From: Macrostomum lignano | Lineage: Eukaryota | NCBI GenBank assembly: GCA_002269645.1 | Contig: NIVC01001022.1 | Span: 186,001-250,000 of the forward strand | Length of the DNA: 64,000 nt | Direction of reading: 5' to 3' | Part shown: piece after piece, positions 1,274 to 40,200 of the stretch | How the letters are laid out: the number at the start of each line of letters is the position of its first letter | Position numbering within the stretch: position 1 is the stretch's first letter | The notes under the pieces: model-generated | Told to the model about the DNA's origin: nothing | The model's input: the letters and a program-made list of their open reading frames with translations, nothing else | The model's database searches: none | Made by a program: the position numbers and the translations under genes

Positions 1274-2081
1274 ATGCCTTTGAAATCTGCGACGCCGCTG
1301 TTCCTATGGACGCCAATAGCTTTAGCGTTCGTTGCTATAGTGATGCCGTTTGAGGTCGCTTCCGCGTCCATTCCGATCAGGGAGCCTGCCAACGTTACCG
1401 CTCTAGTGCTGGCTTCAGACTACAATACTCAGCAAGAGGTGATGAGTCCGATTCAACTGCTCAGACCAGTGTTTCACGTGGCCAAGCAGCATCAACTGGT
1501 GCGCCAAGCATTGGCTGATCGAATCAATTTGCAAGAGGTCTACGTTGACTTCGGCTGCGAGCACAACGTGTCGCTGAAACAGATTATCAATTTAACTTGC
1601 GCCCAGAGAAGCAGCGGTAGGGAAACTTCCACTGAGCCGCGGTTCATTGTCGGAGTACCTTGTTCATATCCGATGAACAACGTCCAGCAGTACATGTTGC
1701 AGCCTACGGATGCCGTAGTATCTACGGGAGCAATTTCTAGCAATCTGGTCAACATGAAGCAGACTATTCGTATTGGAACTACCGCCGACGAGATCTATAA
1801 AGCCTTGCGCGCTTTCATTCGGAATCTCGGCCGATGGAGCGGGATGTTCTACGTCACGATGAACAACGTGATGACAAAGCGACTGCCGCATTACTATCTG
1901 GACTTTGTGCAGTGCAAACTCATCCAGCAGGCGCTCGATCATCATTTGAAACTCGAGCCAAGCTTCCGATACGAGTATGTCTACGTTGACTCGCTGATCG
2001 AGGAGGGCCGGCAGAACGATTCCAGCACATCGTCGCTCTATCGGCGAATTCTGCACGAACGCGTGTCCACCAAGTTCTCCG
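1274..2081 (+). CDS. Receptor guanylyl cyclase variable module A (single exon): signal peptide + N-terminal part of ANF receptor ligand-binding domain
   Basis: ATG at 1274 starts a hydrophobic signal (MPLKSATPLFLWTPIALAFVAIVMPFEVASA). ANF-type Cys pattern DFGC...FIVGVPCSY and TIRIG motif. Ends TTC TCC G|GTAAG, a phase-1 donor; 808 nt = 269 codons + 1. Confidence 0.8.
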
Positions 2082-3517
2082 GTAAGAATAGAAGAACCTT
2101 GGAACTGTTTTTGCGAGCTTTTTCTCTTTTGTCGCTCAGACAGAAAAGAGAAGAGATGGAGGGATAGGGAGCGACCAATATTGGGGACAGTGCTTGGGTT
2201 CGCTATCGTGCAACATTGATTTCTTAATTTCCTGTAGCTTTCCCCCTACGGCTCCCGCTAAGAGGGGTAGAGGAGCGGATAGCCGTCTGTTGAAGAGACT
2301 AGATGCTTAGGGTCGGCGTGGTGAAAGCGAGATAGAAATAGCAGCAGCAGGAAAGTACTTGGATGAGGCCAGACGTCAAGCATAATAGAGCTCAGCTATA
2401 AAATAAGTATTGACTTTATCAGCTCCAACAGAAGCATACATGTGCCCAAGCAATACAATAGCTATCTAGTTTATTACATTAGCAACTTGAGCACATTGCA
2501 AAGCCCGCGCGACAATGAGCTCATTGACCACCTGTTCCATTTTGCAATCCGGTGATGCTAGAGTGAAAGAATTGACTAGTTGGATGTGGAGATCGCAGCA
2601 CGCAAGTATTTCCCCCGCCAGCTGGAGACTTCTGGAGACTGCAAGCCGAGATTCATTCTGTCATTAGCAGGGTGATGCAGTTTTTCTTGCAGCTGTTTTT
2701 GAGATTGTGCGTGCCAGTCAGCTGCATCTGTAATTACGCGTATGATGACGCACGTCAGCAACACAACGAAATTTTCGAACAATTCCACGAGAAATTCTCA
2801 GATCAGGGGGCAGAGAAAAAGGCCGTATGTGTATGCAATGATTGTGGGAATTGCACTACGAGAGTAGCAAGAGATTTCCTTTCTCAGACATTGATCATTG
2901 TCAATGAATTTGATTACCGAACCAGTGGCTACCTAAGCCACTAACTAAATGTAGCAAATTGTATATAATTAATTAAATTTATATTGATTTGGATTTGGCT
3001 ACTTAGTTTATTGGCTATCTTATCAGTTTGGCCAATTCAGATTGCGTACGAGTATGAGCTGTCAGAATCTCGTCAATAATGTTGCACAGAGGCTGATCTA
3101 CTTTATTGTCATTCCCCCCGCGCGACAAACAGCAAGCTGCAGACCTGTTCGCCCGCTTCAGTTTATTTTTACACTACTAATTCTGTATTCTACGACGAGA
3201 GTCGCAACCCTAACCTTAAACCCAAGAATATAGTAGAGGCTTACTTAAACTAGTTTCTGTGCAAAACTAGAGATACTACTACTATACTCGTAAAGGTAAA
3301 TATGGAAATAGGCGGTCAATATCGATTTTTCTTGGCCAGCGTATTAGCCTTCATCCACTGTAAGTGGGCTGTATTGATGCAGTAAAATCTTCTAGACCAG
3401 TCACAAAAAAGTGCGTGACCAGGTGGACCCCCGTGCACCTGAACGCTCGATCATCCCACAAAAATTTTCTTTACCAGACAATAAAACTTTACACCCTTGA
3501 CACCACTCAAGCTCTGA

Positions 3518-3683
3518 CACCCAGTTAGACGCAACCTCTCACACCCAGTTAGACGCAACCTCTCGCATCCAGTTTGACGCAACCTCTCGCATCCAGTTTG
3601 ACGCAACCTCTCGCATCCAGTTTGACGCAACCTCTCGCATCCAGTTTGACGCAACCTCTCGCATCCAGTTTGACGCAACCTCT
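3518..3683. repeat. 24-bp minisatellite, ~7 copies (CCAGTTTGACGCAACCTCTCGCAT)
   Basis: Read directly; 8-aa periodicity in overlapping ORFs. Confidence 0.95.
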
Positions 3684-4902
3684 GTCGCCCGAGTATAATC
3701 TTTTTTGTTCAAATTTTCATGTCGGACGACAAATTTTTTCCAGTTAAAAAATTGAACGACCAATTCAGTGCCGTAAAAAAACTGTCAAACGCTTTTTTAT
3801 GAGGTTCATTTCTTTCTAACTATTTGATACTGTAAGCAAAGCTAGCACAGCCATAATAATTACCGGGTCCTATTTGTTGGATAATTGCTCCAAAAAATAT
3901 TGATTGCAAGTCCTCAGAAAGCGTTTACGTTTTGTTTCGGACTATAAATCTAGTTGTTTTATATGTACCCTAGAATCTTGCTAAACTGTAGAATATTTGA
4001 GCTGAGCTTGTTTCTGCTCTGTTTCTTGAAAGAGGAACCTAAAACAGAGAAATTAGCCAGAGTGTATCAGTTCAATAGCAAGCTGCGATATTCTTTGCAG
4101 TTTCTGTCTTCACAAGTACAACTTTTCTCAAACATTTTGCCTTCTTGATACTACGTTTTTAATAATATGTTAATAAAAATATTAAATGCTGGATTTTTAT
4201 AATTTTAGAAAATTGCTTCAACTTTTTTGTCCGTCAACTAACGTTATCTCATCACTGCGCAGCGCATCTGAAGGCTGCGTACGGCTGTTCAGTCCAAGGA
4301 CTGGGGGTCGCCACACACCCACAATTACCCCAGCTAATGCTGGCACCCATTTTATAGCTGGGTGAACTGAAAGCAATTATGCAGAGTTAAGTGTCTCGCT
4401 CAAAGACTCAAGTTGTTTCACTGGGATCGGAAATCGAACCCCTGACCTTTCAAGTCGTGAAAGTAGCATATAACAAATATTATTGCAGTGAGCCACTAGA
4501 ATAACTGTTAGGTGTCTCACTCTAGTCAGCAGCTTCTTTGCCCTCGCTCTGAACTGTTGTCTACCACTGAGGGCAGCTCTCCCTCTTTTCTCCCTGCCTG
4601 CCCCGCCCCTTACTTGTTCTTTTTTTGCAGCCACCTGGGCAGCTTGGCCTGTGGCCTGCTTCTGCGTTCAGCGGTCACTGGTGGCTTCACTAGTGGCTCG
4701 CCTTTTCACCTTTCCCTTGTCACATGAGCTAGTCACATGACACTAGTCACTAGTCACATAACAAGCCGAACTCACGTGCTCCGGCAGCCTTGCTTTTTAT
4801 TAGGCAAACATTGACGTCAGTTGCTAAAAATAGATCTCACGTGAATTCCTCACGTGACGTCTTGCGCGCTCTATATATACGGTCTAGCTTTCCAATTTCT
4901 AG

Positions 4903-6020
4903 AGTTGCTGAGATGCATGGGCAAAAGTGGGGACTTGCTGAGATGCCATGGCTCAATGGGTGAGTTGCTGAGATGCCATGGCTCAATGGGTGAGCTGCTG
5001 AGGTGTTATGGCTCAATGGGTGAGTTGCGGAGATGCCATGGCTCAATGGGTGAGCTGCTGAGGTGTCATGGCTCCAGTGGGGAGTTACTGAGATGCCATG
5101 GCTCCAGTGGGGAGTTACTGAGATGCCATGGCTCCAGTGGGGAGTTACTGAGATGCCATGGCTCAATGGGTGAGCTGCTGAGATCCGAGATCCCATGACT
5201 CCAGTGGGGAGTTACTGAGATGCTATGGCTCAATGGGGAGTTACTGAGATGCCATGGCTCAATGGGTGAGCTGCTGAGATCCCATGACTCCAGTGGGGAG
5301 TTACTGAGATGCCATGGCTCCAGTGGGGAGTTACTGAGATGCCATGGCTCAATGGGTGAGCTGCTGAGATCCCATGACTCCAGTGGGGAGTTACTGAGAT
5401 GCCATGGCTCCAGTGGGGAGTTACTGAGATGCCATGGCTCAATGGGTGAGCTGCTGAGATGCCATGGCTCAATGGGTGAGCTGCTGAGATCCCATGACTC
5501 CAGTGGGGAGTTACTGAGATGCCATGGCTCCAGTGGGGAGTTACTGAGATGCCATGGCTCAATGGGTGAGCTGCTGAGATCCCATGACTCCAGTGGGGAG
5601 TTACTGAGATGCTATGGCTCAATGGGGAGTTACTGAGATGCTATGGCTCAATGGGTGAGTTGCTGAGATCCCATGGCTCCAGTGGGGAGTTACTGAGATG
5701 CCATGGCTCAATGGGGAGTTGCTGAGATGCCATGGCTCAATGGGTGAGTTGCTGAGATGCCATGGCTCAAGTGGGGAGTTTCTGAGGTGCCATGGCTCAA
5801 GTGGGGAGTTGCTGAGCTGAGGTGCCATGGCTCAAGTGGGGAGTTTCTGAGGTGCCATGGCTCAAGTGGGGAGTTGCTGAGCTGAGGTGCCATGGCTCAA
5901 GTGGGGAGTTTCTGAGGTGCCATGGCTCAAGTGGGGAGTTGCTGAGCTGAGGTGCCATGGCTCAAGTGGGGAGTTGCTGAGATGCCAAGGCTCAATGGGG
6001 GGTTCTATGCCAAGGCTCAA
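4903..6020. repeat. 30-bp minisatellite, ~36 copies (GAGTTACTGAGATGCCATGGCTCCAGTGGG and variants)
   Basis: Read directly; 10-aa periodic ORFs; 31- and 36-bp variants at the 3' end. Confidence 0.95.
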
Positions 6021-6665
6021 TGAGGGAAAGATGACATCCTAAGCTGCAAGGCTTAATAGCAAGGATAGCTAAATTAATAGCTACACAAATCTAAATATAT
6101 GAGCTTATCATCAATAGTTATGTAAAAATGGCTAGTTAGGTTTCCAGTTTTCAATGCTACTCCTTTATTAGGTGACTAAGTAATGGACATTGAGATAACT
6201 AATCGTTCATTGGTATAAACGGAGTATATTTCTCTTCCAAGACGCATCTTGCTGCCAAAAATGACCTTCTTAGCTATAGTTCACACTAATGGTGGCTGCC
6301 AACAGTGCATATGGTATAGTATATACAATATAGCTATTTCTAGTGGTCCTTAGGAGAGAGTCGAGAGCGACAGATTGAACTATTAGACTCAAAAAAGTCT
6401 CAAGCGTTGGGGGGTAGATGAGATTTCTATTTGGCAGTCCGGTCCCCCCCCGAAGAGAGGCTGATGAATCGATTTCGTGACTGCCCACCCCTCTTCGTTA
6501 CTCGATTGGTCTGGGCTTGGCTCCGAGATGAAAATTGTTGGCGCTGAGAGAGTGCAAGTTCTTGTAACTATGCAGGATTAGAATATATTGTTCTGATTAG
6601 AGTTCTTAACGTATTTTTTAATGTTGATAGCTATGTCACGATAGCTATATTTTATTGGAGTGATA

Positions 6666-7144
6666 TTTAGTCGGAGTGACATTTGGTCGGAGTGACATTT
6701 GGTCGGAGTGACATTTGGTCGGAGTGACATTTGGTCGGAGTGACATTTGGTCGGAGTGACATTTGGTCGGAGTGACATTTGGTCGGAGTGACATTTGGTC
6801 GGAGTGACATTTGGTCGGAGTGACATTTGGTCGGAGTGACATTTGGTCGGAGTGACATTTGGTCGGAGTGACATTTGGTCGGAGTGACATTTGGTCGGAG
6901 TGACATTTGGTCGGAGTGACATTTGGTCGGAGTGACATTTGGTCGGAGTGACATTTGGTCGGAGTGACATTTGGTCGGAGTGACATTTGGTCGGAGTGAC
7001 ATTTGGTCGGAGTGACATTTGGTCGGAGTGACATTTAGTCGGAGTGACATTTGGTCGGAGTGACATTTGGTCGGAGTGACATTTGGTCGGAGTGACATTT
7101 GGTCGGAGTGACATTTAGTCGGAGTGACATTTGGTCGGAGTGAA
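6666..7144. repeat. 16-bp minisatellite, ~30 near-identical copies (TTTGGTCGGAGTGACA)
   Basis: Read directly; the 16-aa ORF period equals 3 units. Confidence 0.97.
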
Positions 7145-7586
7145 ATTTGAGCTACCGTATGTCTGGTTGTGGCAATTTTTAGAGCACTAAGGAATAAGCC
7201 ACATTCTTCTGGAAGCCTTATCAGTAGTGATATAAAACCTACATTATAATATTGATCTCATAATTCGCTAATTTCTATTTGCTAGATGTTACGTGACAGA
7301 AGTGAGCAGAGGCGCGATTGAAGCTGAAGCTCATAGAAAAACTACGTGTATGCGTAGCATTGCGTCTGTCAGTCAGCTTCCTGACCTGTCCCGTGTTAAG
7401 TCGATTCCCCTACCTCTGTCAGCCAAATCATCTGGCATATATAGATATTATTGTGATTATTTAGACAATTGGGGCTAAATTTGTGTATAAAAAAAGCCTG
7501 TGCTCTGATCCAATTTCCTAGCTATGCAGAGAAAATTGGTAATATTCCAAGATAATTTATAGGGCTCAGAGAATACTACGAAAATA

Positions 7587-7975
7587 CGGGAGGCATCATA
7601 AACCCGAAATATCATATCTCCGAAAACAAAAATAGCATTGCCCATCATAAACCCGAAATATCACAAACCCGAAATTTCATAACTCTGAAAGTTCTAGCAA
7701 TGTCCAACAATATTTTGGTTTTCGAAGTTATGATATTTCGGGTTTGTGATATTTCGGGTTTGTGATATTTCGGGTTTGTGATATTTCGAATTTATGATAT
7801 TTCGGGTTTGTGATATTTCGGGTTTGTGATATTTCGGGTTTGTGATATTTCGGGTTTGTGATATTTCGAATTTATGATATTTCGGGTTTGTGATATTTCG
7901 GGTTTATGATATTTCGGGTTTATGATGGGAAGTGCTTTCGGAGTTGTGATTTTTCGGGTTTATGATGGCGACCCG
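7587..7975. mobile_element. Foldback/MITE-like element with inverted arrays of a 16-bp unit
   Basis: Left end CGGGAGGCATCATAAACCCGAAA is the reverse complement of right end TTTCGGGTTTATGATGGCGACCCG; ~12 copies of GATATTTCGGGTTTGT on the right, a few inverted copies on the left. Confidence 0.7.
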
Positions 7976-9966
7976 ATAATACTACTATAAGGTGTACAAG
8001 CTAGAATGGCTGGTTGACACTCTCCACAAGGGTGTACAGTGATCCTGACTTTCCTAGCATCCTCAGGCAGTGTACATGTTTAATTAGCGAGCCTTCCAGT
8101 GTCAATTTTCGGTCACGCATGCTACTAAAAGTTATTAAATAAACAATACAAGCTTGTGCCTAGAGCGTGAGTTCACGGTTAGCAAGAAGGATTATAGCAA
8201 GATGAGGATTTCTTGTTGGTTCTTCTTTATTCTTGCCAGCTCTCCATTATACTGCCAGTTTTACATGTAGCTGGCAGTTTACAAAATCAAAAACATTGTA
8301 CTCTAATTTGCCCGCTTAGGTTTATATTTTTCGACCAACTTTGACGCAAAGTCAGACATTGAGAAAGTTATGGCAGTTGTACATCCCTACGTGACTGGTG
8401 TTTATTCCCCGGAAAGCTCCACGCTTGTAGCCTTTCACCTTGGTGTTATTTTGAGAACACTGTTTCATGCTAGAAGAAACCAGTTTCTTGTTAGCCCCAA
8501 TTGACTGACATTGACTTCTCCCATGTGCCTCGGTTTGTTTAGCAAGATTCTCCAGTTCATCCAAAGTTTCGCAATATCACCCAGCATGAGCTTTAGCCGT
8601 TATTTCTATTTGCTGCTACTGAAACCTCTTTGGATGGGATGTCTATCAGTGGAGGCATCATTGAAGAGTTAATTCTCAACCAGACAGTGATGTCCTTTCC
8701 AAACTGAGCATTATTTCAGATTTAAATTCTTTCTAAATTTCACCTTAAGACCGAACCGTAAATGATTGCTCATGCGAGTATCTATCGAAAAACTATTCGT
8801 AAGAGAGAGAGTGTCAAAAGATAAATCGTTTCGTGAACGTATCCAGTTTTAGTTTTCCTTTGTTAAGCAAACGGAAATGCTATATTTTATTTTAACTATA
8901 AATAGTTCACAGAAGCAACTAACTATAGTTTTTTTTGCAAAAAATCGCCTTCACATGCCTTCGTCTCTAAGCCTGTCTAAGAACAATGCTGTGATTTTTG
9001 TGGTCTTCCTTTTGTCGGTCGGCCAATATTGAATTTCCAACTAGTAGAACAATCAAGGGCAGATACGCTTCTAGAATTTTTAGGCCGGTCAGCAAGTGCA
9101 ACTTCTAAGCTTTCTCAGACGGGAATTCCGTAGGATAAAAAATGTCGTCTCTAACTTTCTGTGCCTTGAGAGAGTTGGCTCTTATGAATTTTAAATCGAT
9201 TGACAAACCTGAATTACTGGGATCGAGGGACTTCAAGCCGCGGATTGTTCTGAATTTTTCCTGAGCAAATGTTTTTAAAACACGCGGCTATAAATGTAGC
9301 TAGATATGGTAAAAATTAATTAATAGAAGAAATACAAAACACCAAGCAGTACCGAAGTTAAAGCAACCTATTAATATTGTACGCGAACTCCGCCTAGCAC
9401 CAGCTGAGACTTCGATATTTTTAATTCCAAGGTTCCATCATTTATAAATGAGTGTGAAATATCGAATTTTTCTTGTGCTCTACCGGTATTCAAAAAGCGA
9501 GAATTACTCGTAAAATTGATTTTTTTCAATTTCGACTATTCGTTTCAGTTTTAAGCAGGTTTTCAATACTAACAAATCATAATACGAGTACAAGAGAAGT
9601 TATATGAAATGGATGTGCAAGATTTGATAGTTTCATTAAGCTTACGGCTCAGTTCCTGTAGCTTAGTTTTTTAGCACTCATTGGGAATGAAAAATTAATT
9701 TTAACTTGACCTCAGTTTTCGCATTCATTCAGTGCTCAGCTTTAAAATGAAGATCTATGACAGTTCCGCTATTATGATGCATTTGTGAGATAAGATACGG
9801 CAAACTTTTACTGGGCTTCAGACTCGAAATTCGAAAAAGCTTAAGCAAGAAAGTAAAGGAGCCTAAAAGGTTTTCATCACAATACGCCTTAGACTGGCTT
9901 GAGTACGACTTTGAAGCATGATGTCTTTAGCACTACTCTGTGCTGCCTCTAGGCTCTTAATCTAGG

Positions 9967-10595
<629 letters not shown>

Positions 10596-11370
10596 GTTTA
10601 ATTTAATTTGAATCACTAAACATTCTGTACTACCTACTATCTGAGTAGCATTCCGTGAAAGATGATCAGTTTTCAGTCCTTTCAAATAAAAACAGACTGA
10701 AGAATCTGTCTCGAGCCGCAAGCAGGCAGAGCTGCAGGAGATTAACTCGCAAGTAGTTTTCCTTCTTTACTTTTCTATTCATGACGCAAGCAGGTGAGGG
10801 CCTCCAGCAAAGCTTTGAGGCTCCCGGCCTGCCTGGCCAAGTAGAAAATTGCGTCGCAAGAAAAGTAGACGAGAGGGGCAGCAGAATCCCGATGTAACGA
10901 TTTGTGCAAAATCTGCCTGTCTGTCCGCCTCACCCCCTCATTTCACACGGGTCTCATCAGCCGTCATCTGCTCACCTGCGCTTCGACAGACGGACTAAGC
11001 GGCACGTTGCCCCGTCAGTTTTTTTTCCTGGGAAGATTGACCTGTCAGAGACTGAGCAGCCCTCGGGGGTGGGGGGTCGCCTCGCTTGGGCAACTTGCGT
11101 CAGGCAAAAATATGAAACAAAAGCAAAAGAAATGATGATTGCAGGCCTGACAGGGGGGAAAAATGGCTAAAGATGTAGAAGAAGGGATGATTAGGAAAAA
11201 TGAGGACTTGAGGAGTTAATTATGTTGACATATTAACCTGTAGTTTCTACGAGTATTGATCAAATATATGGAATAACTTTCCATGGACTTGATTATTAAA
11301 AAAATCAAGTAATTTAGCTACACTAATGAATGTATTACTTTTACTAGCAGGGAAATAGAATAGATTAGAT

Positions 11371-13065
11371 ATAATAGAAATAGAATGGATAGATCATGGA
11401 AATAGAATGGATAGATCATGGAAATAGAATGGATAGATCATGGAAATAGAATGGATAGATCATGGAAATAGAATGGATAAATAATGGAAATAGAATGGAT
11501 AGATAATGGAAATAGAATGGATAGATCATGAAAATAGAATGGATAGATAATGGAAATAGAATGGATAGATCATGGAAATAGAATAGATAGATCATAAAAA
11601 TAGAATGGATATATCATGGAAATAGAATAGATAGATCATAAAAATAGAATGGATATATCATGGAAATAGAATGGATAGATCATGGAAATAGAATAGATAG
11701 ATCATAAAAATAGAATGGATAGATCATGGAAATAGAATGGATAGATCATGGAAATAGAACAGATATATCATGAAAATAGAATGGATAGATCATGAAAAAA
11801 GAATGGATAGATCATGGAAATAGAACAGATATATCATGAAAATAGAAAGGATAGATCATGAAAAAAAGAATGGATAGATCATGGAAATATAATGGATAGA
11901 TCATGGAAATAGAATGGATAGATAGTGGAAATAGAATGGATAGATAATGGAAATAGAATGGATAGATCATGGAAATAGAATGGATAGATCATGGAAATAG
12001 AACAGATAGATCATGGAAATAGAACAGATATATTATGAAAATAGAATGGATAGATCATGGAAATAGAATGAATAGATCATGGAAACAGAATGGATAGATC
12101 ATGGAAATAGAACAGATAGATCATGGAAATAGAACAGATATATTATGAAAATAGAATGGATAGATCATGGAAATATAATGAATAGATCATGGAAATAGAA
12201 TGAATAGATCATGGAAATAGAATGGATAGATCATGGAAATAGAACAGATAAATCATGGAAATAGAACAGATATATTATGAAAATAGAATGGATAGATCAT
12301 GGAAATAGAATGAATAGATCATGGAAACAGAATGGATAGATCATGGAAATAGAACAGATAGATCATGGAAATAGAACAGATATATTATGAAAATAGAATG
12401 GATAGATCATGGAAATAGAATGAATAGATCATGGAAATAGAATGAATAGATCATGGAAATAGAATGGATAGATCATAAAAATAGAATGGATATATCATGG
12501 AAATAGAATAGATAGATCATAAAAATAGAATGGATAGATCATGGAAATAGAATGGATAGATCATGGAAATAGAATGGATAGATCATGGAAATAGAACAGA
12601 TATATCATGAAAATAGAATGGATAGATCATGAAAAAAGAATGGATAGATCATGGAAATAGAACAGATATATCATGAAAATAGAAAGGATAGATCATGAAA
12701 AAAGAATGGATAGATCATGGAAATATAATGGATAGATCATGGAAATAGAATGGATAGATAGTGGAAATAGAATGGATAGATAATGGAAATAGAATGGATA
12801 GATCATGGAAATAGAATGGATAGATCATGGAAATAGAACAGATAGATCATGGAAATAGAACAGATATATTATGAAAATAGAATGGATAGATCATGGAAAT
12901 AGAATGAATAGATCATGGAAATAGAATGAATAGATCATGGAAATAGAATGGATAGATCATGGAAATAGAACAGATAGATCATGGAAATAGAACAGATATA
13001 TTATGAAAATAGAATGGATAGATCATGGAAATATAATGAATAGATCATGGAAACAGAATGGATAT
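11371..13065. repeat. 22-bp satellite, ~76 copies (GGAAATAGAATGGATAGATCAT)
   Basis: Read directly; variant blocks recur at an 836-bp offset. Confidence 0.97.
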
Positions 13066-13607: not shown

Positions 13608-13642
13608 CCAATCCCCATTGGTCAGACACTCTGTTAGCCAAT
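13608..13642 (+). promoter_or_regulatory. Cluster of three CCAAT boxes upstream of module B (candidate promoter)
   Basis: CCAAT 13608, ATTGG 13617 and CCAAT 13638, 170-200 bp before the ATG; motif evidence only. Confidence 0.4.
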
Positions 13643-13811
13643 CCAGCCTTACAACAAAACCGATCCAGCGCAATACTTTGCCAACAAACCTCTAGCGTAG
13701 CCCGTAGCCCGCCGCGTGCCTACAGGGACAAAATTTTGCATGCATATTCGACAATATTCAAACTTCAAAAAAACAAATACACTAAAAATAAATACTAAAA
13801 GCAACATTGAA

Positions 13812-14161
13812 ATGCATTCTGAGCTCACGGTGGCAGTTGCAATCTTTTTAACCATGGCTGTCAATCAATTTCAATTTGCCGTCGCTATTAAGCCGAAATT
13901 TCGACTGCTAGCTTTGCTGCCGTTCAACACGACGCATCAGTTCCGGGCCGAACTCATCCAGCCAAGTGTCCCCTTCGCTTTGGAGACTTTGAGAAGACTG
14001 AAACTCACTGAGCAGTTCGATTTGCAGATTAGCTTTGTGAACTCCACCTGCTCAAATCTTGCCGCACTGCCAGCCATGGAGCACCTGTACAGAGACGCTG
14101 TTGATGGATTTATTGGTCTGGGATGTCCGGAGAGTTCGAGTCAGATTGTGCAGTTCTCTGG
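13812..14161 (+). CDS. Receptor guanylyl cyclase variable module B, exon 1 (signal peptide + ANF domain start)
   Basis: MHSELTVAVAIFLTMAVNQFQFAVA signal, then LLALLPF...NSTCS...FIGLGC, typical of the ANF domain N-terminus. Donor TCT GG|GTAAGT (phase 2). Confidence 0.85.
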
Positions 14162-14271: not shown

Positions 14272-14765
14272 ATAGTAGATCTAGCGCCCTCTCTCTACAT
14301 TATAACAGGTCTAGCGCCCACTCTCTACATTATAATAGATTTGGCGCCATCTACATTATAACAGGTCTAGCGCCCTCCCTACATTATAACAGATCTAGCG
14401 CCCTTTCCTACAGTATAATAGATCTAGCGCTTTCCCTACACTATAGTAGATCTAGTTCCCTCCCTACATTATAATAGATCTAGCGCCCTCCCTACATTAT
14501 AATAGATCTAGTTCCCTCCCTACATTATAATAGATCTAGCGCCTTCCTTACATTATAACAGATCTAGCGCCCCCCTACACTATATTAGATCTAGCGCCCT
14601 CCCTACATTATAATAGATCTAGCGCCCTCCCTACATTATAATAGATCTAGTTCCCTCCCTACACTATAATAGATCTAGCGCCCTCTCTACACTCTAATAG
14701 ATCTAGCACCCTTCCTACATTATAATAGATTTAGTTCCTTCCCTACATTATAGTGGATCTAGCGC
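14272..14765. repeat. 28-bp minisatellite, ~17 copies (TAGATCTAGCGCCCTCCCTACATTATAA)
   Basis: Read directly; in the intron of module B. Confidence 0.93.
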
Positions 14766-16450
14766 CATCCTCACACCTTTCAAACCAGATCAAGTGTCGC
14801 GCTCCGAGAACACCTAGAACGAACTTAAATTAAAATTGAGCCAATATATAAAAGAACATCAAGTTGAACTTTCTAAATGCACGTGATTCCAAATTAAGCC
14901 ACAGCTAAAGTCAGTTCACAGCACAAAAACCTTCATGCCAAAAAGCTAAGTGAACTTTTAGTTTAATATATCTGGACAGAACAGCGTCATCCATTGAGCA
15001 ACGCTAAATCTCTCTTTTTCAGTCCAAGCCTTTTAGCGTGCCACTCTAATTGAAGTGCTTCGCTTAAACAATACATTTTATTCTCATTTTTAACTGACGC
15101 GTCCCCAGTTCATTGTTTGTTCATCACTTCAACTCTGGATTCCACTCCGAAATTTCCACTGTTTCCTAATCTGATTTCTCTAAGAGTGCCTGCTGAAGGG
15201 AGGGACAAAAATAGACGGTTTGAGTAAGTAATGGAAATTCGATGTAACAAAATGGGAAGATATCGGATGGGGAACTTTACTAGTTGTGCTTGATGAAGCG
15301 GGGTGGATGATTTTGATACAGAGCTTCCCAGCGACTTTCTATTTTTCAAGTAAACGCGTGTCAGTCACTTTGAAGACTTCCCTTTCAATTTGCTTCACCC
15401 TGAGCTGCTTCAATTGTATGGCTTCTGAAAAAGATTGGGCTGCGAAAATTTCTAGCAAAACTGAACTAGCTATAAGCTACTTACAGTAGGCGGCTTGCAA
15501 AGTTTTTTTTATTAATTTGGAACTAATTAATATCGAGCGTACATTTATATATCAAGGAGTACTCAAGTAGGACGGGAAAGTACGTTTCTTATAAAATGTT
15601 TATGAGGCTGGTTTTGGCCGAAAACTGGTTATGGGTCTGCCTCCTATCGAAAGCAATAACAATTTTTGTGCTGAAAAAATGAAAACTTCCTATCTCGGTA
15701 GTGTATTTTTCGGCCAAAACCAGCCTCGTAAACATTTTATAAGAAACGTAGTATCCAGTCCTACAAGGGGGGCCGTAGCCCAGCGGTCTAGCGCAGGCTC
15801 TGGTGTGCCAGCGACCCAGGCTCGATTCCAAGTGCAGTCACATTAATTTGGGGCTGAATTGGAATCTCGGCTTGGCTCTGCTCGTGCAATTAACGGCCTT
15901 GAGAGGCAACCCCCCAAGGCGCAGTGAAGTGTACATGCCTAACGATAAAATAAAGTTAGGGCCGCTGTACACTCCTGTGTGAGTGTGTGCCTGCGTACGT
16001 ATCCGCGCGCTTGTATGCCTGCTCAGGGGAGTCGGCGGATTGGGCAGCAATGCCTCTCGCCGGTTGTGTGCCAATGTCACTTAAAGTGCGTCAGGGTGCA
16101 CACAACCCCCATGCCTCTAATAAAAAAATCCAGTCCTACATTTACTTAAGTAGTCCTTGGTATATAGACAAGTAGAAGGATGCTGTATGTCTTTTGTGCG
16201 AGTGTGTAGAGTCGCAACCTTACCCCTGTCATCTTTATAGTTCATCTGCCCTCGTCTCTGTTTAATCTGCTTTCTTTCCCTTTCTGTCCAGTTCAGTCTT
16301 GTTATTTTTCTCTCTCTTTCGCTGTCTTCTGATTGGCTATTCAATCTCGCCTCCTCGAGCTCTCTATGGCCAAAACTCTGTTAACCGTTTAGGGCTATTA
16401 ACTGGTCGGGAATTTCAGAAGCTTGTTTTTTGTTTATAAAAATGCAAATA

Positions 16451-16803
16451 ATAGTCTATGTTAGACGGTGTAGTCTATGGTAGACGGTATAGTCTATGGT
16501 AGACGGTATAGTCTATGGTAGACGGTATAGTCTATGGTAGACGGCATAGTCTATGGTAGACGGTATAGTCTATGGTAGACGGTATAGTCTATGGTAGACG
16601 GTATAGTCTATGGTAGACGGTATAGTCTATGGTAGACGGTATAGTCTATGGTAGACGGCATAGTCTATGGTAGACGACATAGTCTATGGTAGACAGCATA
16701 GTCTATGGTAGACGGTATAGTCTATGGTAGACGGCATAGTCTATGGTAGACGACATAGTCTATGGTAGACAGCATAGTCTATGGTAGACGGTATAGTCTA
16801 TGG
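16451..16803. repeat. 19-bp minisatellite, ~18 copies (GTCTATGGTAGACGGTATA)
   Basis: Read directly. Confidence 0.95.
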
Positions 16804-17015
16804 TCTATTGTCTATATGGATATATACACGTATAAATTGTATAAATAGATATACATAAAAATCCAGTTGCCAGAAGCTTGCTTGGATTTAAAGCAATCTT
16901 TAACTCTTGCTTTTTGGGCAATCACTGTTTGCTTCTTCGATTTACTGTAAAATACTATTAAAATGTTTCTTTCCTACTACAAGTAATAACAACTTTCTTT
17001 CGCAAAAAATTGCAG

Positions 17016-17359
17016 AGTGAAATGGAACAAAGCGGTGGTGAGCATCGGCTCAGTGGAATCAGTTTTTCGCGACACAACCAAAATACAATACATTAACAAT
17101 ATTTTTGTTCGAGTGAGCTTCGATGGCGCGGAATTGATGGAATCTATTCTAAGAATGATATTTCTTAGAAATGGTTGGCAAAGGTTTTTCGGCTTGTTCA
17201 GTTTGAATTACGGCTACGCTAACGAAGGCTGCAACTTGCACATAATGGATTTGAATCGGATGCGCAAGGAGCTGGGCATTGAGGCCGAGTTCTTGAGCGT
17301 CAGCAGGCTTGATGAGCTGCCGATGGCGTTTCGTAGAAAGATCGCTGCCCAGTACTCCG
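17016..17359 (+). CDS. Receptor guanylyl cyclase variable module B, exon 2
   Basis: Acceptor TTGCAG|A is phase-2 compatible with B exon 1 (QFSG-VKWNKAVVSIGS, matching the family xxWNxPVITxG segment). Contains LRNGW and EGC. Ends TAC TCC G|GTGAG (phase 1). Confidence 0.8.
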
Positions 17360-20300: not shown

Positions 20301-20634
20301 GCTGTGTGACATTACTACGACAGTATACGTACTATTTGTTGCACGTTGGATTATTTATCACTTACGGGTCTAAAAAGGTTTTTTCCAAGATTCCCCTCTG
20401 TCCCCATTTTCCCTTCCTTCTAACCGATACAGCAGCAGCTGCTGCAGCAGCGGCCAATCAGATTCTTCCATAGCTGTCTATAGCTGGGATCTTTCCGATC
20501 GTCACTCGCCATTCAATATATGAAGGCCCACTCGCCACCCTAGCCTACTTTCTTTGCGCTGCTCAGTAGACGGTATCCCCCTTAGTCAGGTTATCGAAGG
20601 CTACTGACAGACGATTTAGCAGGAAAAAGTCGCA

Positions 20635-20935
20635 ATGACGTCGAAAATTTCGTTGCTAATCGTATTTCTGGCTGCTGTTCAATCGAGCCAGGCCCAAGCG
20701 GATGGCAAAAAGACACTTAAAATAGCCATCTTTCTTCCCGCACAACTGCACGGAGTGTCCGGAATCAGTTTGGAAGCTGTTCAACCTGTTGTCGACGTGG
20801 CTTTGAAGTCGTCCGGCTTAGATAAAATGCTGCCTGGTGTGCAAATTCAAATTATTTCTAACGACAGTCAGTGCGACTATCGGTACGCGCCCGTGATTGG
20901 ACTGCTCCTACTCAAAGATATCGATCTGTTGCTAG
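20635..20935 (+). CDS. Receptor guanylyl cyclase variable module C, exon 1 (signal peptide + ANF domain start)
   Basis: MTSKISLLIVFLAAVQSSQA signal, KIAIFLP, NDSQCD, DLLLG. Donor CTA G|GTGAGT (phase 1). Confidence 0.85.
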
Positions 20936-21531: not shown

Positions 21532-21954
21532 GTCCATTCTGTACGTTCTGTCTCGCGGCGGTGGCTCGCTACAACCGGTACTACCTGTATCAAAAACCAA
21601 TTATCACCTCTGGCGCAGCGGCTAACCTAGAAGACAAAGAGGAATATTATAACTTGATTCGAGTAGGCCCTATGAACTTCGACATTGAGAACATGCTGCT
21701 AGCCATTTTTCAGCGATACAACTGGTTGCCAAGGCAGCAGCAGAATCTACTAATAATCTACGTGCCAGATGACGAGACTCAACTTCACAAGCAGAGAGAC
21801 GAGACGAGAGTGACGTTCAGCAGGCTGTTGCGCACTACGATCGAGAACCGGTTCAGCCACCAGCACAGATACATACTGAGAGTCAAGCCCTACAGTGCCA
21901 CCAATAAGCACTTTCAAAGCGAAGTATTTCGCTGCATGAGAGAGGAAGTTAGGC
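21532..21954 (+). CDS. Receptor guanylyl cyclase variable module C, exon 2
   Basis: Acceptor TTCCAG|GT gives GPFC...PIITSGA...LIRVGP...FQRYNW, all ANF-domain motifs. Donor AGG C|GTAGGT (phase 1) gives EEVR-L-VVLC on joining the shared exon. Confidence 0.85.
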
Positions 21955-23135: not shown

Positions 23136-23247
23136 TTGTCGTACTCTGCGCCGACCCGGACACTGTCCGAGAGATCATGATCAAGGCTCACGAGCTGGGC
23201 TTCATCAACGGGGAGTACGTCTTCTTCAATATTGACCTGTTCAGCAG
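23136..23247 (+). CDS. NPR1-like: Receptor guanylyl cyclase, first shared (constant) exon: VVLCADPDTVREIMIKAHELGFINGEYVFFNIDLFS
   Basis: Polypyrimidine acceptor TTTTTATTTCAG|TT (phase 1) and donor AG|GTGAG (phase 2). The peptide is a well-conserved invertebrate NPR-type segment. It is absent from the ORF track because it lacks a start codon. Confidence 0.92.
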
Positions 23248-29976: not shown

Positions 29977-30539
29977 CGAACGCTTGACCTCTCGACCATG
30001 GTACCGGAAGACCGACTCAAACGAAAGAAACGCCGCCGCCTCCGTGGCCTACCGAGCCCTCATGACCATCACATTGCGCAAGCCAAATAGCACCGAATAT
30101 CGCGATTTTAGCGATAAAGTCAAAGCAGCAGCTAAGCAGAATTATAGTTTCGAATATCCGGAAGAGGAAGTGAATAGTTTTGTCGGTGCATTCCATGACG
30201 CTGTACTGTTGTACGCTCTGGCTATAAATGACACCCTGGCAACGCACGGTCTTGCTGGCATCTCAAACGGCTCATTGATCACCTCCCGAATGAAGAGCCG
30301 CACGTTCAAAGGCATTACTGGCACGGTAAGCATCAACGCTAATGGAGATCGGAATGCCGACTACTCGCTGCTAGACATGGACAAGAACACCAAGAACTTC
30401 ACCGTGGTGGCGCACTACTATGGTAACACTAAACGATACGAGCTAGTCAGTGGCAAAGTGATCGATTGGTTCAGCAAGGACAATTTACCGCCACCAGACG
30501 TGCCCAAGTGTGGCTTTGACAATTCACGCTGCAAGAAAG
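29977..30539 (+). CDS. NPR1-like: Receptor guanylyl cyclase constant exon 2 (C-terminal ectodomain)
   Basis: CGCAG|C acceptor (phase 2). RPWYR...FHDAVLLYALA...FKGITGTVSINANGDRNADYSLLD...PDVPKCGFDNSRC. Donor AAA G|GTGCGA. Confidence 0.93.
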
Positions 30540-30722
30540 GTGCGATTAAGGAATATTTTAGCTATAATACGTTTCTCTTAGTTGTAAAGTTGAGAAACAA
30601 ACCTGACAGTTATCAATCATTTAATGAAGTATGAATGCTTCATGGACTGAGTTAGTTTTATAAATACATTTGTTTTGAAAACAAACAGTTCAAAAAATCA
30701 CACTCCACTGAAAAATCTTCAG

Positions 30723-31435
30723 ACCTGTCCGAGATGGCCATCTATGCTGTAATCGTTCTATTAGTGCTAATATGCGTCCTATCCGTGCTGATCGGTGTCA
30801 TTTATCGGAAACTGCGCCTAGAAAGCGAGCTGCATGCCATGAACTGGCGCATCGCTTGGAGCGAGCTGGAGCCAACCGAACGACTCGCCGCGCGTCGACG
30901 CAGCATGGCTAGTCAGAGTTCGCGACTTCGCGAGCGTCCATCAGACAGCGGCGCTCAACGAACTCAAACTTTTGGAAATCACCAACAGGAGGGCGAAGAG
31001 GCCCAGCCGCTCAACCCGACGCCGAATGAGCAGCAGCAGCAGGATGAAGATCCGGCGATCGCACCCAAGGGTAGCGATGTAGTTAGCAGTAATGATTCTG
31101 TTGAGACGATCGCGGGGGTGCCATTGAGCCAGATTCCTGTGGCTCAGCTATTCGCTAAAACTGCCTATTACAAGGGCAATCTTGTAGCCTTAAAACAAAT
31201 CTACCTGAGAAACAAGCGCCTCGAGGTGAACAACAAAATTCTAATGGAGATTAAACGGGTGAAAGATCTGGCTTCGGACAACATCGTCCGATTCATTGGA
31301 GCCTGTTTAGACTCGCCGAACGAGTGCTTGGTGACTGAATATTGCCCAAAAGGTTCGCTTCAAGACATTCTTGAAAATGATAATCTCAATTTAGATTGGA
31401 TGTTCAAGTTCTCCCTGATGCTGGACATATGTCGG
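30723..31435 (+). CDS. NPR1-like: Receptor guanylyl cyclase constant exon 3 (TM helix, juxtamembrane region, start of kinase-homology domain)
   Basis: TM AIYAVIVLLVLICVLSVLIGVIY, then YRKLRLESEL..MNWRI, VALK, VTEYCPKGSLQDIL. Acceptor TTCAG|AC, donor CGG|GTGAGT. Confidence 0.95.
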
Positions 31436-31755: not shown

Positions 31756-31924
31756 GGAATGATCTATCTTCATCACAGCTTTGGATCTCATGGCAACCTA
31801 AAGTCGTCCAACTGTCTGGTTGACTCCAGATTCAGCCTAAAAATTGCCGACTTTGGCCTGCACTCGCTTCGAGGCAGCAAGGAGCTCAAAGAGCGGGACG
31901 ATTCCGATTATTCCTCGTACAGAA
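31756..31924 (+). CDS. NPR1-like: Receptor guanylyl cyclase constant exon 4 (kinase-homology domain)
   Basis: [30 protein letters not shown]; HGN replaces the catalytic HRD, as in rGC pseudokinases. Donor A|GTGAG. Confidence 0.95.
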
Positions 31925-34448: not shown

Positions 34449-34610
34449 ACAAACTGTGGACAGCGCCCGAACTGCTGCGGAATCCGTCCACTGCGCCAGC
34501 GGAGGGCACCCGCGAGGGAGACGTGTACAGCTTTGGGATCATTGCCCAGGAGATTATCTATAGGAAGGGCGTCTTCTATATTAGCGACTACGATTTTCCG
34601 GAACCGCAGG
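34449..34610 (+). CDS. NPR1-like: Receptor guanylyl cyclase constant exon 5
   Basis: [10 protein letters not shown]...[20 protein letters not shown]|AC acceptor, G|GTAAGT donor. Confidence 0.95.
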
Positions 34611-34651
34611 GTAAGTGAGAAACTCGGTCGAATTTTTTGTCAGCGCTTATT

Positions 34652-34980
34652 TCAGCGCCGCAGGCACTCATTTTAGCGCTGCAGGCACTCATTTTGGCGC
34701 CGCAGGCACTCATTTTGGCGCCGCAGGCACTCATTTTAGCGCTGCAGGCACTCATTTTGGCGCCGCAGGCACTCATTTTAGCGCTGCAGGCACTCATTTT
34801 GGCGCCGCAGGCACTCATTTAAGCGCCGCAGGCACTCATTTTAGCGCTGCAGACGCTCATTTTAGCGCTGCAGGCACTCATTTTAGCGCTGCAGGCACTC
34901 ATTTTAGCGCCGCAGGCACTCATTTTAGCGCCGCAGACACTCATTTTAGCACCGCAGGCGCGCATTTTACCGCCGCAGGA
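34652..34980. repeat. 21-bp minisatellite, ~15 copies (GCGCCGCAGGCACTCATTTTA), followed by a hAT-like end GGCGACGCCCCTG at 35074-35086
   Basis: Read directly; 7-aa periodic ORFs; only one TIR-like end seen. Confidence 0.9.
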
Positions 34981-35415: not shown

Positions 35416-35882
35416 ACATCATCGAGAAGATCCGCCAGCCAGTTGGTTCGCAGCCGCCGTTTCGCCCGAGCCTCAGCCAGGAGCTGGTTGACCTGGACGG
35501 GGAGCGAGTCCAGGCCCTGCTAGGCATCGTGCGCAGCTGCTGGCACGAAGATCCGAATGCTCGGCCGAATTTTAACGCTGTCAAAAGTCGAATTAGCCGA
35601 TTTAATAAGGATGCCGAATCTGGTAACATTTTAGACAACCTGCTCAAACGAATGGAGCAGTACTCTAACAATCTGGAGAGCCTTGTTGCTCGGCGAACCG
35701 ACCAATACCTGGAGGAGAAGAAGAAGGCAGAGAACTTGCTCTACTGCATGCTGCCAAAGCAGGTGGCAACCACTCTGATGAAGGGTGAATCAGTCACGGC
35801 GGAGTGGTTCGACAGTGTTACGATCTATTTCTCGGATATCTGCGGATTTACGGCGCTGTCCAGTGAGAGCACACCCATGGAG
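35416..35882 (+). CDS. NPR1-like: Receptor guanylyl cyclase constant exon 6 (end of kinase-homology domain, hinge/coiled coil, cyclase start)
   Basis: PPFRP...CWHEDPNARPNF...NILDNLLKRMEQYSNNLE...VTIYFSDICGFTALSSESTPME; splice sites are phase-compatible. Confidence 0.96.
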
Positions 35883-36513: not shown

Positions 36514-36757
36514 GTGGTGAACCTACTCAACGACTTGTACACGCTGTTTGATCGCATCATCGAGCAGTACGACTGTTACAAAGTCGAAACGATCGGCGAC
36601 GCCTACATGGTCGTATCCGGCCTACCCGGCCGCAACGGCAATTTGCACGCGCGCGAGATTGCTCGGATGTCGTTGAGCTTCTTGAGGAACATATTCTCGT
36701 TTAAGATTCGGCACAAGCCCGATGCGCAACTGAAACTGCGAATTGGAGTTCACTCAG
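36514..36757 (+). CDS. NPR1-like: Receptor guanylyl cyclase constant exon 7 (catalytic domain)
   Basis: [30 protein letters not shown]...LRIGVHSG; carries the guanine-specifying Glu of KVET. Confidence 0.97.
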
Positions 36758-37619: not shown

Positions 37620-37994
37620 CAGGGGGTCGGCAAACTTTTTAACCTCAAGGGTCAGATAGAGAATCTAATGCATGACTGCGGGCCATAGGAGGGAGAGAGA
37701 AGAGAGATAGAGAAAATAGAGAAGAGAGAAGATCAGAGAGATAGGGGAAAGGAGAAGCGAGGGAAGAGAAGAGATAGGAGAGATAGAGATAGAGAAGAGG
37801 AGAGGGGAAGAGAGAGTAGAGGGGAGAGGACAGGAGAAAAGAGAGAGGAGAGAAGGGAAAAGAGAAGTGGTTAAAAGAGAGAAAACAGCTGAGAAGTGAC
37901 AAACCTTAAGCAGGCCGGATTGCTATTGTGAAGTTCCAAAGGACCCGATCAGCCGTATCGAGAGGCTTCGTGGGCCTGAGTTTGCCGACCCCTG
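37620..37994. mobile_element. hAT-like MITE with AG-rich core
   Basis: Near-perfect ~15-bp TIRs CAGGGG(G)TCGGCAAAC / GTTTGCCGACCCCTG; flanks CGTTAGGT and AGTTACGT match at 6 of 8, consistent with a decayed TSD. Confidence 0.75.
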
Positions 37995-38070
37995 AGTTAC
38001 GTCATCGTATTGAAATGCCATAATTCTTATTATATGTACAAGCTGTAGCTCATGCCACTGATCCACTTAG

Positions 38071-38261
38071 GTCCCGTTTGCGCCGGAGTCGTCGGCTTAA
38101 AGATGCCTCGCTACTGCCTATTCGGCGACACGGTGAACACGGCCTCCCGGATGGAGAGCAACGGCCTGCCGCTAAAAATTCACATTAGCTCGTTGACGTA
38201 CGCCATTCTAGAGGAGATCGGCGGTTTTGTGACAACTGAACGCGGCGAAGTTGAGATGAAG
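38071..38261 (+). CDS. NPR1-like: Receptor guanylyl cyclase constant exon 8 (catalytic domain)
   Basis: [30 protein letters not shown], with the GC-specific Cys in RYCLF. Donor AAG|GTTAGT. Confidence 0.97.
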
Positions 38262-38905
38262 GTTAGTGCGAAAAAATTTGTAAAACATTTAGAGTAGTGG
38301 TCCTCGGCCCTCTGTGCATTTTATTGCAATAGTTATTCAGAGAAAGTGAATTACTACTTCGGCAAGAATATCTGAGCATATTAGATCTATTTTTTTTCCG
38401 ATTTGAATGAGATGTAAGTTTCAATACACTCTTACCATTGCATTTCCCTGGTAGCATAAAATTCGACAAAATCACATCAAATTATTCACGTTTTTACAGG
38501 TCTTTCGAAACAAACCAGCGCTTACCGAAGCAAACCTACATAGAAAAAAGAATATCAATTTTATTGATATTGATGGACATATTCAATTAGCAATATTTTA
38601 CGAGGGTATACACCAATATCTATTTGTACAAAATCATGCATGTATGCGGTGCATATAGAAAAGATGCCTTTTTGCGTTTTATTTGGTGCGACACACGCAG
38701 TGGAAACGAGCCAAGCCGAAAGACATGGTTTGCCCTAAACATGTGCAGAAAGCCAGCAACCCATTTGGTCTAAACTGCATTCTATTTGGGCTCACTGAAG
38801 ATGCACCAAGAGCAATACAATTTCATAATGCTTTCAAACAAAAACCATATAAACTAAACAGTCGAATCACAGCAAATCGGTGTCAGTATCAATGTTCATG
38901 ATTGG

Positions 38906-39972
38906 CTACAACTCTTGAAAGTGAATGTCGTCCAGATTTAGGCAGCGCTGAACGTACGTCTGTGTGTAGTTCACCCACTGCAGACGCTTTGCCGCCGTCA
39001 TGCTGCTCATCGCCAGCTGAAATTCACGCTTCGGAGTGCGCATCCTATGCTGATGCAGTGTGATGCCTTGCGCTGCAGCCTGTTGCCTGTCTGCCACCTG
39101 TACCTGAATGCCGTTTACATTCAGCCGTATCTTCAGGTCGGCCTTGAACGCACCACCTGCCATCTCTGCCAGGTTCAGATGAGGAAGGGCGAGTAGGTTG
39201 GGAGAAAATCTGTGGTGGTGGCCGGCGTGCATCCCTGGCGCATTTGAGTGTGCATGAGCACCATCAGAGAGAAGCGCGAATGGTGGATCCACCAGCTCGT
39301 CAACTTCAGAGACGATCATCCTAGAAAGTTTTCATTCTTGAATCCGCCTTCGATTACCGAAAAATGCAAAAGCCCTAGTTTCTGTGAAATGGCCAGGCAG
39401 ATGGTGAGGTTCTGGTCACATTGCCCCGCTCCGAGAGGCGTCCGAGAGCTGTCCAGAGGTTCACTTCAAAGTCGTCCATGAACAGAAGGTGCTCCTGGCT
39501 GCCCTCATCTACGTCCTAATGACCACTGCACATGCATTCGGCGAGCCTCCTTTGTCACCGGCGTGTTCCACTCAATAGGAACCTGACGCAAAAGCTTCAG
39601 GGGTTATCAACTGGCTATCCAGAGCGCGACTGAAGGCGCTGCAACGGATGTTCAGTTTCTCATTGTTGTCTTGCTGTAGGTGCGTCTTCATCTGCGCCAG
39701 TGTTGCAGCTGGGTAGCTGGACACGAACTCTCGATCAATCTGTCCATCACTGGCTGCATAAGCTTCCTTTTCTTCACTCCTCCCTTCGGCAGAGTTCCAG
39801 TTCGTCCCGTCTCCACATACGTGGTCGCAATGCTTCTCACCGACTGCTTAGCGAATCCCTGCATCCGACCAAGGGTTTTCCAGTCGTAACCGTTTTGGCA
39901 GGCGTTCACGATTCTCTCACGGTCCACCAAGCTGATTTTGGAATAAGTTTGGGCATGGCCTCTATGTGCCAT
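38906..39972 (-). pseudogene. Decayed IS630/Tc1-mariner-type DDE transposase in the last intron of the cyclase gene
   Basis: Hand translation across frameshifts: N-terminal HTH (SLVDRERIVNA...TGRTGTLPKGG), ATLAQMK..L, ITLKLLRQVPIEWNT, FMDDFEVNLWT (first Asp region), LSDGAHAH (DNAxxH-like), PHLNLAE (LNPIE-like). At least two frameshifts and an internal stop; TIRs not found. Confidence 0.75.
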
Positions 39973-40128
39973 GTCTCAATTTCTCTTGTAGAAGCTATTC
40001 TTGGGCAGACAAATTTAAACACAAATATTTCCAAATTGCTTTCTGTTTTCTGCTAAGTCTTGTAGTAGCTGGCAACATGAAAAATTTACTATCAATTGGC
40101 TAAACAATGTGTTTGACAACAATTTCAG

Positions 40129-40200
40129 GGCAAGGGTCTCCAGAAAACGTACTGGTTACACGGAGAAAATGACAATATTGTTGATCCGCCAACAAACTAG
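40129..40200 (+). CDS. NPR1-like: Receptor guanylyl cyclase terminal exon GKGLQKTYWLHGENDNIVDPPTN*
   Basis: TTTCAG|GGC acceptor (phase 0), canonical GKG..TYWL cyclase C-terminus, TAG at 40198-40200. AATAAA at 40423 is a candidate polyA signal. Confidence 0.92.
   Translation, partial: GKGLQKTYWLHGENDNIVDPPTN

Follow-up and report, generated by a model that had tools for sequence, protein, structure and literature searches.

A 64-kb stretch of the Macrostomum lignano genome (contig NIVC01001022.1, positions 186001 to 250000, assembly GCA_002269645.1; hereafter the window) carries a gene in which several 5' modules, each encoding the first half of an ANF ligand-binding domain, precede one splice acceptor and one transmembrane (TM), kinase-homology and cyclase region. 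This architecture is real. We read the locus as a single gene for a natriuretic-peptide-receptor (NPR)-type membrane guanylyl cyclase with alternative 5' modules and a shared body, and we put the probability of this reading at about 0.8. What we observe directly is the anatomy, the compatibility of the reading frames, the presence of each constant exon in one copy, and isoform A in the form of a deposited model based on a transcriptome. The window sequence is eukaryotic and intron-rich, and the GenBank gene at the locus, BOX15_Mlig025214g3, spans exactly positions 1274-40200; all coordinates given here without an accession or locus handle are positions in the window.

An earlier, sequence-only reading of this DNA had described three modules, A, B and C, each consisting of a signal peptide and an ANF segment and lying in tandem, and every one of their coordinates was confirmed by our rebuilt gene model (Table 1). 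In each module the ATG is followed by a strongly hydrophobic leader, with a maximum 12-residue hydropathy of 2.5 to 2.7, and the module as a whole covers approximately the first 230 to 270 residues of an ANF-type ligand-binding domain, which is roughly its first half. The final donors, tccg/GTAAGA at 2081, tccg/GTGAGG at 17359 and aggc/GTAGGT at 21954 (a slash marks the splice site), are all phase 1 and fit the phase-1 acceptor at 23136 (tttatttcag/TTGTCG), which takes exactly one upstream base; the splice sites thus read as had been claimed. Rebuilt from the raw sequence, the nine constant exons show AG/GT at every boundary, and joining A, B or C to them gives 3501, 3387 and 3417 nt of open coding sequence, equal to 1166, 1128 and 1138 aa with a single terminal stop each, reproducing the earlier sums. 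A single continuous Pfam ANF_receptor match (PF01094, E from 4e-37 to 7e-48) runs from the module into the constant part in each of the spliced ectodomains. When the ectodomain is aligned to NPR-A structures (E = 4e-55), the module junction falls near residue 207 of the roughly 435-residue NPR-A ectodomain, so that the domain is divided roughly in the middle, its first half being variable and its second constant.

The constant exons match Pfam PK_Tyr_Ser-Thr/Pkinase (E = 4e-12) and Guanylate_cyc (E = 1e-25), in agreement with the precomputed Pfam domains of the deposited M. lignano protein P0196, and the TM helix can be read from the translated exon 30723-31435 as the hydrophobic stretch AIYAVIVLLVLICVLSVLIGVIY followed by RKLRLE. 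With an ectodomain, TM helix, kinase-homology domain and cyclase domain in place, the predicted product has all the features that we tested for an NPR/gcy-28-type receptor guanylyl cyclase. A tblastn search with a full-length mollusc ortholog matched each of the TM, kinase and cyclase exons once in the 64 kb, bearing out the earlier statement that no second copy of them exists. The same reading had worried that an assembly gap might hide catalytic exons belonging to A and B; the window contains no N, and hence no assembly gap, and it is identical to the compared contig stretch across the 50.2 kb in which the two overlap. A hidden second catalytic half was ruled out by the single-copy constant exons and the gap-free window.

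The modules themselves are highly divergent. A has no BLAST similarity to B or to C, and B and C are 23% identical; on these values a recent tandem duplication was ruled out as the origin of the modules, and judged by their divergence A, B and C would be old. C is of the canonical type (GPxC...VARY), and the first exon of B is recognized on its own as ANF_receptor by Pfam (E = 1e-5). Only A, B and C were matched when the window was searched by tblastn with module probes from eleven sources.

Isoform A is present in the public record. P0196 (PAA73242.1, "hypothetical protein BOX15_Mlig025214g3", 1166 aa), which we reached by a protein search seeded with a nematode gcy-28-type protein and found among its matches, equals module A plus the constant exons residue for residue. 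The M. lignano gene set is a genome-guided RNA-seq assembly built with StringTie and TACO together with a mapped de novo transcriptome and TransDecoder open reading frames (ORFs), and the Mlig_3_7 annotation was made with an isoform fraction of 0.75, by which minor isoforms were dropped (PMC5730564). Because of the locus-tag naming, we assign the GenBank coding sequence (CDS) of the A isoform to this RNA-seq-based gene set, in which case the junction 2081>23136 would have transcript support; and because of the 0.75 isoform fraction, minor isoforms were filtered out by design.

The same join is seen in L001, a 1677-nt Logan contig from run SRR28338163. After a 5' untranslated region (UTR), its ATG opens an A-type module that matches A at 34% identity (E = 1e-51) and leads straight into VVVLCADPDTVREIM... 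and on through constant exons 1 and 2, with the next intron retained at the conserved donor. Its constant part is 77% identical to that of the window, and its source is another species or an unsampled paralog. L001 appears to be transcript-derived, because two introns are absent from the contig. The intron kept after constant exon 2 brings a stop after two codons (L001 1615-1623, ...CKQGE and then the stop), and this could represent either unspliced pre-mRNA or a soluble NPR-C-like ectodomain isoform. Read-through of the constant exon 2 donor in the window (30539-30634) would likewise add about 31 codons before a stop.

These records bear on the alternative that A, B and C are the first exons of three genes, whose catalytic halves were lost to misassembly or lie elsewhere, or that they encode short secreted half-domains. 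Short predicted proteins in which a module reads into the intron do exist (P0205, P0087, P0088-P0091), but they end by read-through of a GT donor, a typical prediction artefact, and half of a periplasmic-binding-protein-type fold is unlikely as a stable product. Misassembly is opposed by the gap-free window and its identity with the contig over the 50.2-kb overlap. Moreover, the A-to-constant join is annotated in M. lignano and recurs in the independent transcript contig L001, and the arrangement of several heads on one body is also found in Caenorhabditis elegans, which has a finished genome, and in a gastropod. We consider separate genes or half-domains very improbable. Chance origin of the array is excluded, because isoform A equals a deposited protein and for each of the three modules a conserved counterpart exists elsewhere.

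For module C, the join to the constant exons appears in the UniProt models P0199 and P0204 of an older assembly, which are predictions and not transcripts. The combination of a C-type module with the constant part also occurs in the M. lignano paralogs P0002 and P0163, and module C is 51% identical to the N-terminus of P0002. Going by these predicted models and by its canonical module type, C would be spliced to the constant exons as well. For module B, an exhaustive search with its second exon led to P0205 and P0208, M. lignano proteins of a paralogous locus. P0205 is 53% identical to module B over 206 aa, covers both B exons and ends at the same ...YS/G before reading through into the intron. 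Since frame, length and boundary have been kept in the paralog despite divergence to the 53% level, module B seems to have been under constraint for a long time. A protein search with module B plus constant exon 1 returned distant canonical modules only. The intact ORF, the compatible phase, the conservation in the paralog and a promoter-like motif together suggest that B, too, would be joined to the constant region. The earlier proposal that one locus makes at least three receptors therefore stands for A, through the deposited model, and is plausible for B and C, whose joins are predicted or deduced and whose use in vivo would complete the set.

According to the mechanism that we propose, transcription or, possibly, spliced-leader (SL) trans-splicing would set the 5' end at one module, and the last phase-1 donor of the chosen module would pair with the strong shared acceptor at 23136. 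This join would complete the bilobed ligand-binding domain with its constant second half, followed by the TM, kinase-homology and cyclase parts, and the resulting receptors would be alike in their cGMP output, with the N-terminal half of the ectodomain as their sole difference. The polypyrimidine tract of the 23136 acceptor is the strongest in the gene, with 17/19 pyrimidines as against 11/19 at the internal acceptors of the second exons of B and C (B2 and C2).

Several points weigh against the reading of one gene with three alternative modules. The internal acceptors at 17016 (B2) and 21532 (C2) lie inside the intron of A-initiated transcripts. Joins from A to C2 and from B2 to C2 are in frame, the one from A to B2 is out of frame, and the annotated A isoform skips both B2 and C2, for which the weaker pyrimidine tracts are the only cause that we can offer. 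No transcript of module B was found, and the exact isoform B and isoform C proteins were absent from a collection of 15 billion proteins. In the public record, older predictions are the sole models to contain either B exon 2 or all of module C. Among them, P0204 strings B exon 2, module C and the constant region together one after another, a structure that is probably not genuine.

Part of this would also fit the view that only A, perhaps with C, is used, and that B is an unused or decaying relic of exon duplication which by chance is still open. Isoform B lacks both a transcript and an exact protein, module B is public only inside the chimeric prediction P0204, and the transcriptome-based annotation lists the A isoform only on the consulted record. 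The last of these is uninformative, because the pipeline removes any isoform that does not reach 75% of the major one and the consulted record keeps the longest product only. Against a relic, B preserves 231 open codons over two exons with canonical GT/AG sites and ends in the required phase 1. The paralogous B-type module, with its 53% identity over 206 aa and the same end point, points to long divergence under constraint, and a CCAAT box lies upstream of B at a distance similar to that for A and C. We judge it unlikely that B is such a relic.

Two further points of the same kind concern the 5' ends. The strict NF-Y-type motif RRCCAATSR has 18 sites in the 64 kb, and one of them is placed 183-205 nt upstream of each module ATG. 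For a 40-nt target, the chance of such spacing is about 0.011 per module and about 1e-6 for all three, figures that are supportive and not proof because the spacing was noticed post hoc. Alignment of the three upstream regions revealed no common element besides the CCAAT boxes. As candidate elements the three boxes would fit three promoters, and each module probably has its own. The second point is that SL trans-splicing could supply the 5' ends without separate promoters, since SL trans-splicing affects about 30% of M. lignano genes and transcription units often have several trans-splice sites (PMC5730564; PMC8629364).

It is thus conceivable that a single promoter at or upstream of A serves the whole locus and that the 5' ends of B and C arise by SL trans-splicing or by alternative cis-splicing. 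Besides the frequency of trans-splicing and its several sites per unit, this would agree with the sequence CTACAG, an acceptor of the [T/C]TNCAG type, some 90 nt before the B ATG, with AG acceptors preceded by pyrimidine tracts 65-70 nt upstream of the C ATG, and with P0204, which takes an acceptor just upstream of the C ATG. It is opposed by the CCAAT boxes 183-205 nt upstream of all three ATGs, by the apparent C. elegans ortholog, in which separate promoter fragments give isoform-specific expression (PMC9249223; PMC8816384), and by the A-type contig L001, which has a 153-nt non-SL 5' UTR. We regard one promoter for all modules as improbable, and separate flatworm promoters, one for each module, would be the preferred arrangement. 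Upstream of B, a second in-frame ATG is present at about 13740, 24 codons before the chosen start (MHIRQYSNFKKTNTLKINTKSNIE-MHSELT...), with no stop between them, and the CTACAG at about 13718-13723 fits the M. lignano trans-splice acceptor consensus; because of this ATG and this motif, the true 5' end and start codon of module B are uncertain.

The layout is not new but belongs to a conserved design. The sequence-only reading had known of no such report for a receptor guanylyl cyclase, and this did not hold, as C. elegans gcy-28 already has the same layout at the same codon, with isoform-specific promoters in the literature: gcy-28.c and gcy-28.d are treated as splice isoforms with separate promoters, broad for.c and directed to AIA interneurons for.d (PMC9249223; PMC3842693; PMC8816384). 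The N-termini of the c (P0094) and d (P0111) forms of C. elegans GCY-28 (T01A4.1; UniProt Q86GV3), about 290 and 264 residues long, are unrelated, and from VIILCASPDTVREIM on the two forms are identical, save for two small internal splice differences. In the worm locus (L004), the modules are arranged in tandem, with the five exons of the d module at 6001-9214, the single exon of the c module from 16495, a third module of one exon, encoding a signal peptide, at about 20233-20897, and the common exon from about 22771. The worm donors AAT G/GTGAGT and AAC T/GTAAGT and the acceptor ttttcag/TG ATT ATC CTA TGT are phase 1.

In the two genes, the codon that precedes (I/V)(I/V)LCA is split by a phase-1 intron, and in the flatworm the join reads G/gt ... 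ag/TT GTC GTA CTC TGC. In both, a single common exon is preceded by three tandem N-terminal modules, each with its ATG and signal peptide, and the common part starts with VxxLCAxPDTVREIM. From best hits, the shared motif and the position and phase of the intron, the M. lignano gene appears to be an ortholog of gcy-28. However, the modules do not pair off as orthologs between the two species: flatworm C is similar to nematode d, at 30% identity, whereas A and B have no detectable nematode counterpart. The order also differs. The multi-exon d module of the worm is the 5'-most, so its internal acceptors never lie in the intron of another isoform, whereas the two-exon modules B and C of the flatworm are downstream of the single-exon A.

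The comparison of orthologous loci that had been suggested thus recovered a module array upstream of the same exon in C. elegans, and it did so in the gastropod Gigantopelta aegis as well. In its ANP-receptor-1-like gene (L002, CM027794.1:32.23-32.26 Mb), three tandem modules precede the same constant exon, with a phase-1 acceptor ttttag/TT ATG GTT CTG TGT and donors ..G/GTAAGT at two of the modules. Unlike flatworm A, B and C, which are at most 23% identical, the Gigantopelta modules are 52-67% mutually identical and represent recent lineage-specific duplicates. A further difference is that the GenBank annotation splits the gastropod modules or chains them wrongly (P0085), and the locus is known here from the genomic sequence. 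Just downstream of the real constant exon 1 of Gigantopelta, its 3' end (...GEYVFLNIDLFS) is repeated about six times at a spacing of 115-169 nt (L002 18213-18991).

Clustered protocadherins and UGT1A splice variable first exons to constant exons, and the flatworm locus had been likened to the former. The likeness extends to tandem 5' coding units that are cis-spliced to the first constant exon and create extracellular or ligand diversity on a common cytoplasmic or catalytic part, and perhaps to a promoter element for each unit. It does not extend further: the flatworm locus has only three modules (four with an upstream fragment), B and C are two-exon units with acceptors of their own at 17016 and 21532 where the known systems have single exons without an acceptor, and the flatworm join falls inside the ANF domain, so that the variable part is half a domain and not a self-contained region. 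The vertebrate receptors NPR-A, NPR-B and NPR-C have the same order of ANF ectodomain, TM, kinase-homology and cyclase. In vertebrates, ligand diversity comes from separate receptor genes with one ectodomain each, whereas the single flatworm gene carries several alternative ectodomain halves.

Table 1. Exons of modules A, B and C, shared exons and CCAAT boxes of the M. lignano receptor guanylyl cyclase gene
Feature	Position	Strand	Description
Module A, single exon	1274..2081	+	ATG, signal peptide, first 269 aa of ANF domain; phase-1 donor CCG/GTAAGA
Module B exon 1	13812..14161	+	ATG, hydrophobic leader, ANF domain start; phase-2 donor TGG/GTAAGT
Module B exon 2	17016..17359	+	Ends in phase-1 donor CCG/GTGAGG
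Module C exon 1	20635..20935	+	ATG, signal peptide, canonical NPR-type ANF start; phase-1 donor TAG/GTGAGT
Module C exon 2	21532..21954	+	Ends in phase-1 donor GGC/GTAGGT
Constant exon 1 (VVLCADPDTVREIMIKAHELGFINGEYVFFNIDLFS)	23136..23247	+	Shared phase-1 acceptor
Constant exon 2	29977..30539	+	Second half of ANF ligand-binding domain
Constant exon 3	30723..31435	+	TM helix, juxtamembrane region, kinase-homology start
Constant exon 4	31756..31924	+	Kinase-homology domain
Constant exon 5	34449..34610	+	Kinase-homology domain
Constant exon 6	35416..35882	+	Kinase-homology end, dimerisation helix, cyclase domain start
Constant exon 7	36514..36757	+	Guanylate cyclase catalytic domain
Constant exon 8	38071..38261	+	Guanylate cyclase catalytic domain
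Constant exon 9	40129..40200	+	C-terminus, stop TAG ending at 40200
Strict CCAAT box (module A)	1069..1077	-	NF-Y-type RRCCAATSR, 205 nt upstream of A ATG; candidate core-promoter element
Strict CCAAT box (module B)	13615..13623	-	197 nt upstream of B ATG; further CCAAT pentamers at -204, -174
Strict CCAAT box (module C)	20452..20460	+	183 nt upstream of C ATG

That more modules might lie upstream had been suspected from the position of A near the window edge, and a fourth module-like exon was indeed located about 6.6-7.0 kb before window base 1, at NIVC01001022.1:179011-179439 (L003 1738-2166). Its ORF reads ...CVHAFFGPLTDYAMTQFIPF...DCVFEVVGSMTADP and then a stop, and aligns at 45% identity (E = 9e-34) with residues 109-231 of the extra N-terminal module in P0003. 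In the 1.7 kb that precede it we found no first exon, and we saw no phase-1 donor ahead of its stop; the exon could be a relic or belong to another alternative module.

Several public gene models from such loci are built in series. The M. lignano paralog model P0003 strings together another module type, part of a C-type module and the constant region, and in Gigantopelta P0085 (L002 10001-19940) chains two modules with constant exon 1; together with P0204, these look like mis-annotations caused by the module array. Many RefSeq and GenBank models of about 830 aa from molluscs and nematodes, among them "isoform X" entries (P0012, P0015, P0024, P0071, P0076 and others), start at an internal Met of constant exon 1, reading MIKAHEL... 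or MLAAHEL... This suggests that many species have transcripts whose alternative 5' exons have gone unrecognised.

The introns between the modules and one intron of the constant region are filled with dense minisatellite and microsatellite arrays, with periods of 4-30 nt and up to 157 copies (3521-3683, 4902-6027, 6657-7149, 7731-7926, 9967-10595, 11351-13064, 14272-14770, 16451-16804 and 34649-34979). On both strands these arrays create numerous long ORFs that are spurious. Beyond the 3' end of the cyclase gene, three very long ORFs of 678, 2535 and 1004 aa follow in series at 46057-59677 on the forward strand. The 2535-aa ORF has a dynein-type AAA domain (Pfam AAA_5, AAA and AAA_7, at about residues 1242-1350), and the three probably belong to one giant AAA-ATPase gene with few introns.

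Our full-text literature searches found no description of the conservation of this array across nematodes, flatworms and gastropods. We lean toward the view that several heads on one body is no peculiarity of nematodes but an ancestral protostome feature of the gcy-28/NPR-like cyclase, in which the module exon ahead of the conserved phase-1 intron has been repeatedly duplicated, diverged and lost in a birth-and-death manner. If so, nematodes, flatworms and molluscs would all be using a single catalytic chassis, each adjusting on it which ligand is recognised and in which cell types the receptor is expressed. The gene indicates that alternative 5' modules, instead of gene duplication, can provide a receptor guanylyl cyclase with varied ligand-binding halves, a solution common to nematodes, flatworms and gastropods at the same intron, and the array accounts for a class of mis-annotations of the receptor-cyclase gene in public genomes. 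In the transgenic flatworm model, the modules offer specific probes and promoters for cell-type studies. The ligands of gcy-28 are, to our knowledge, unknown; differing ligand specificity of the flatworm isoforms would be one outcome of the arrangement, and the question is now framed for gcy-28 as well, namely, whether the alternative ectodomain halves bind different ligands or mainly carry different promoters.

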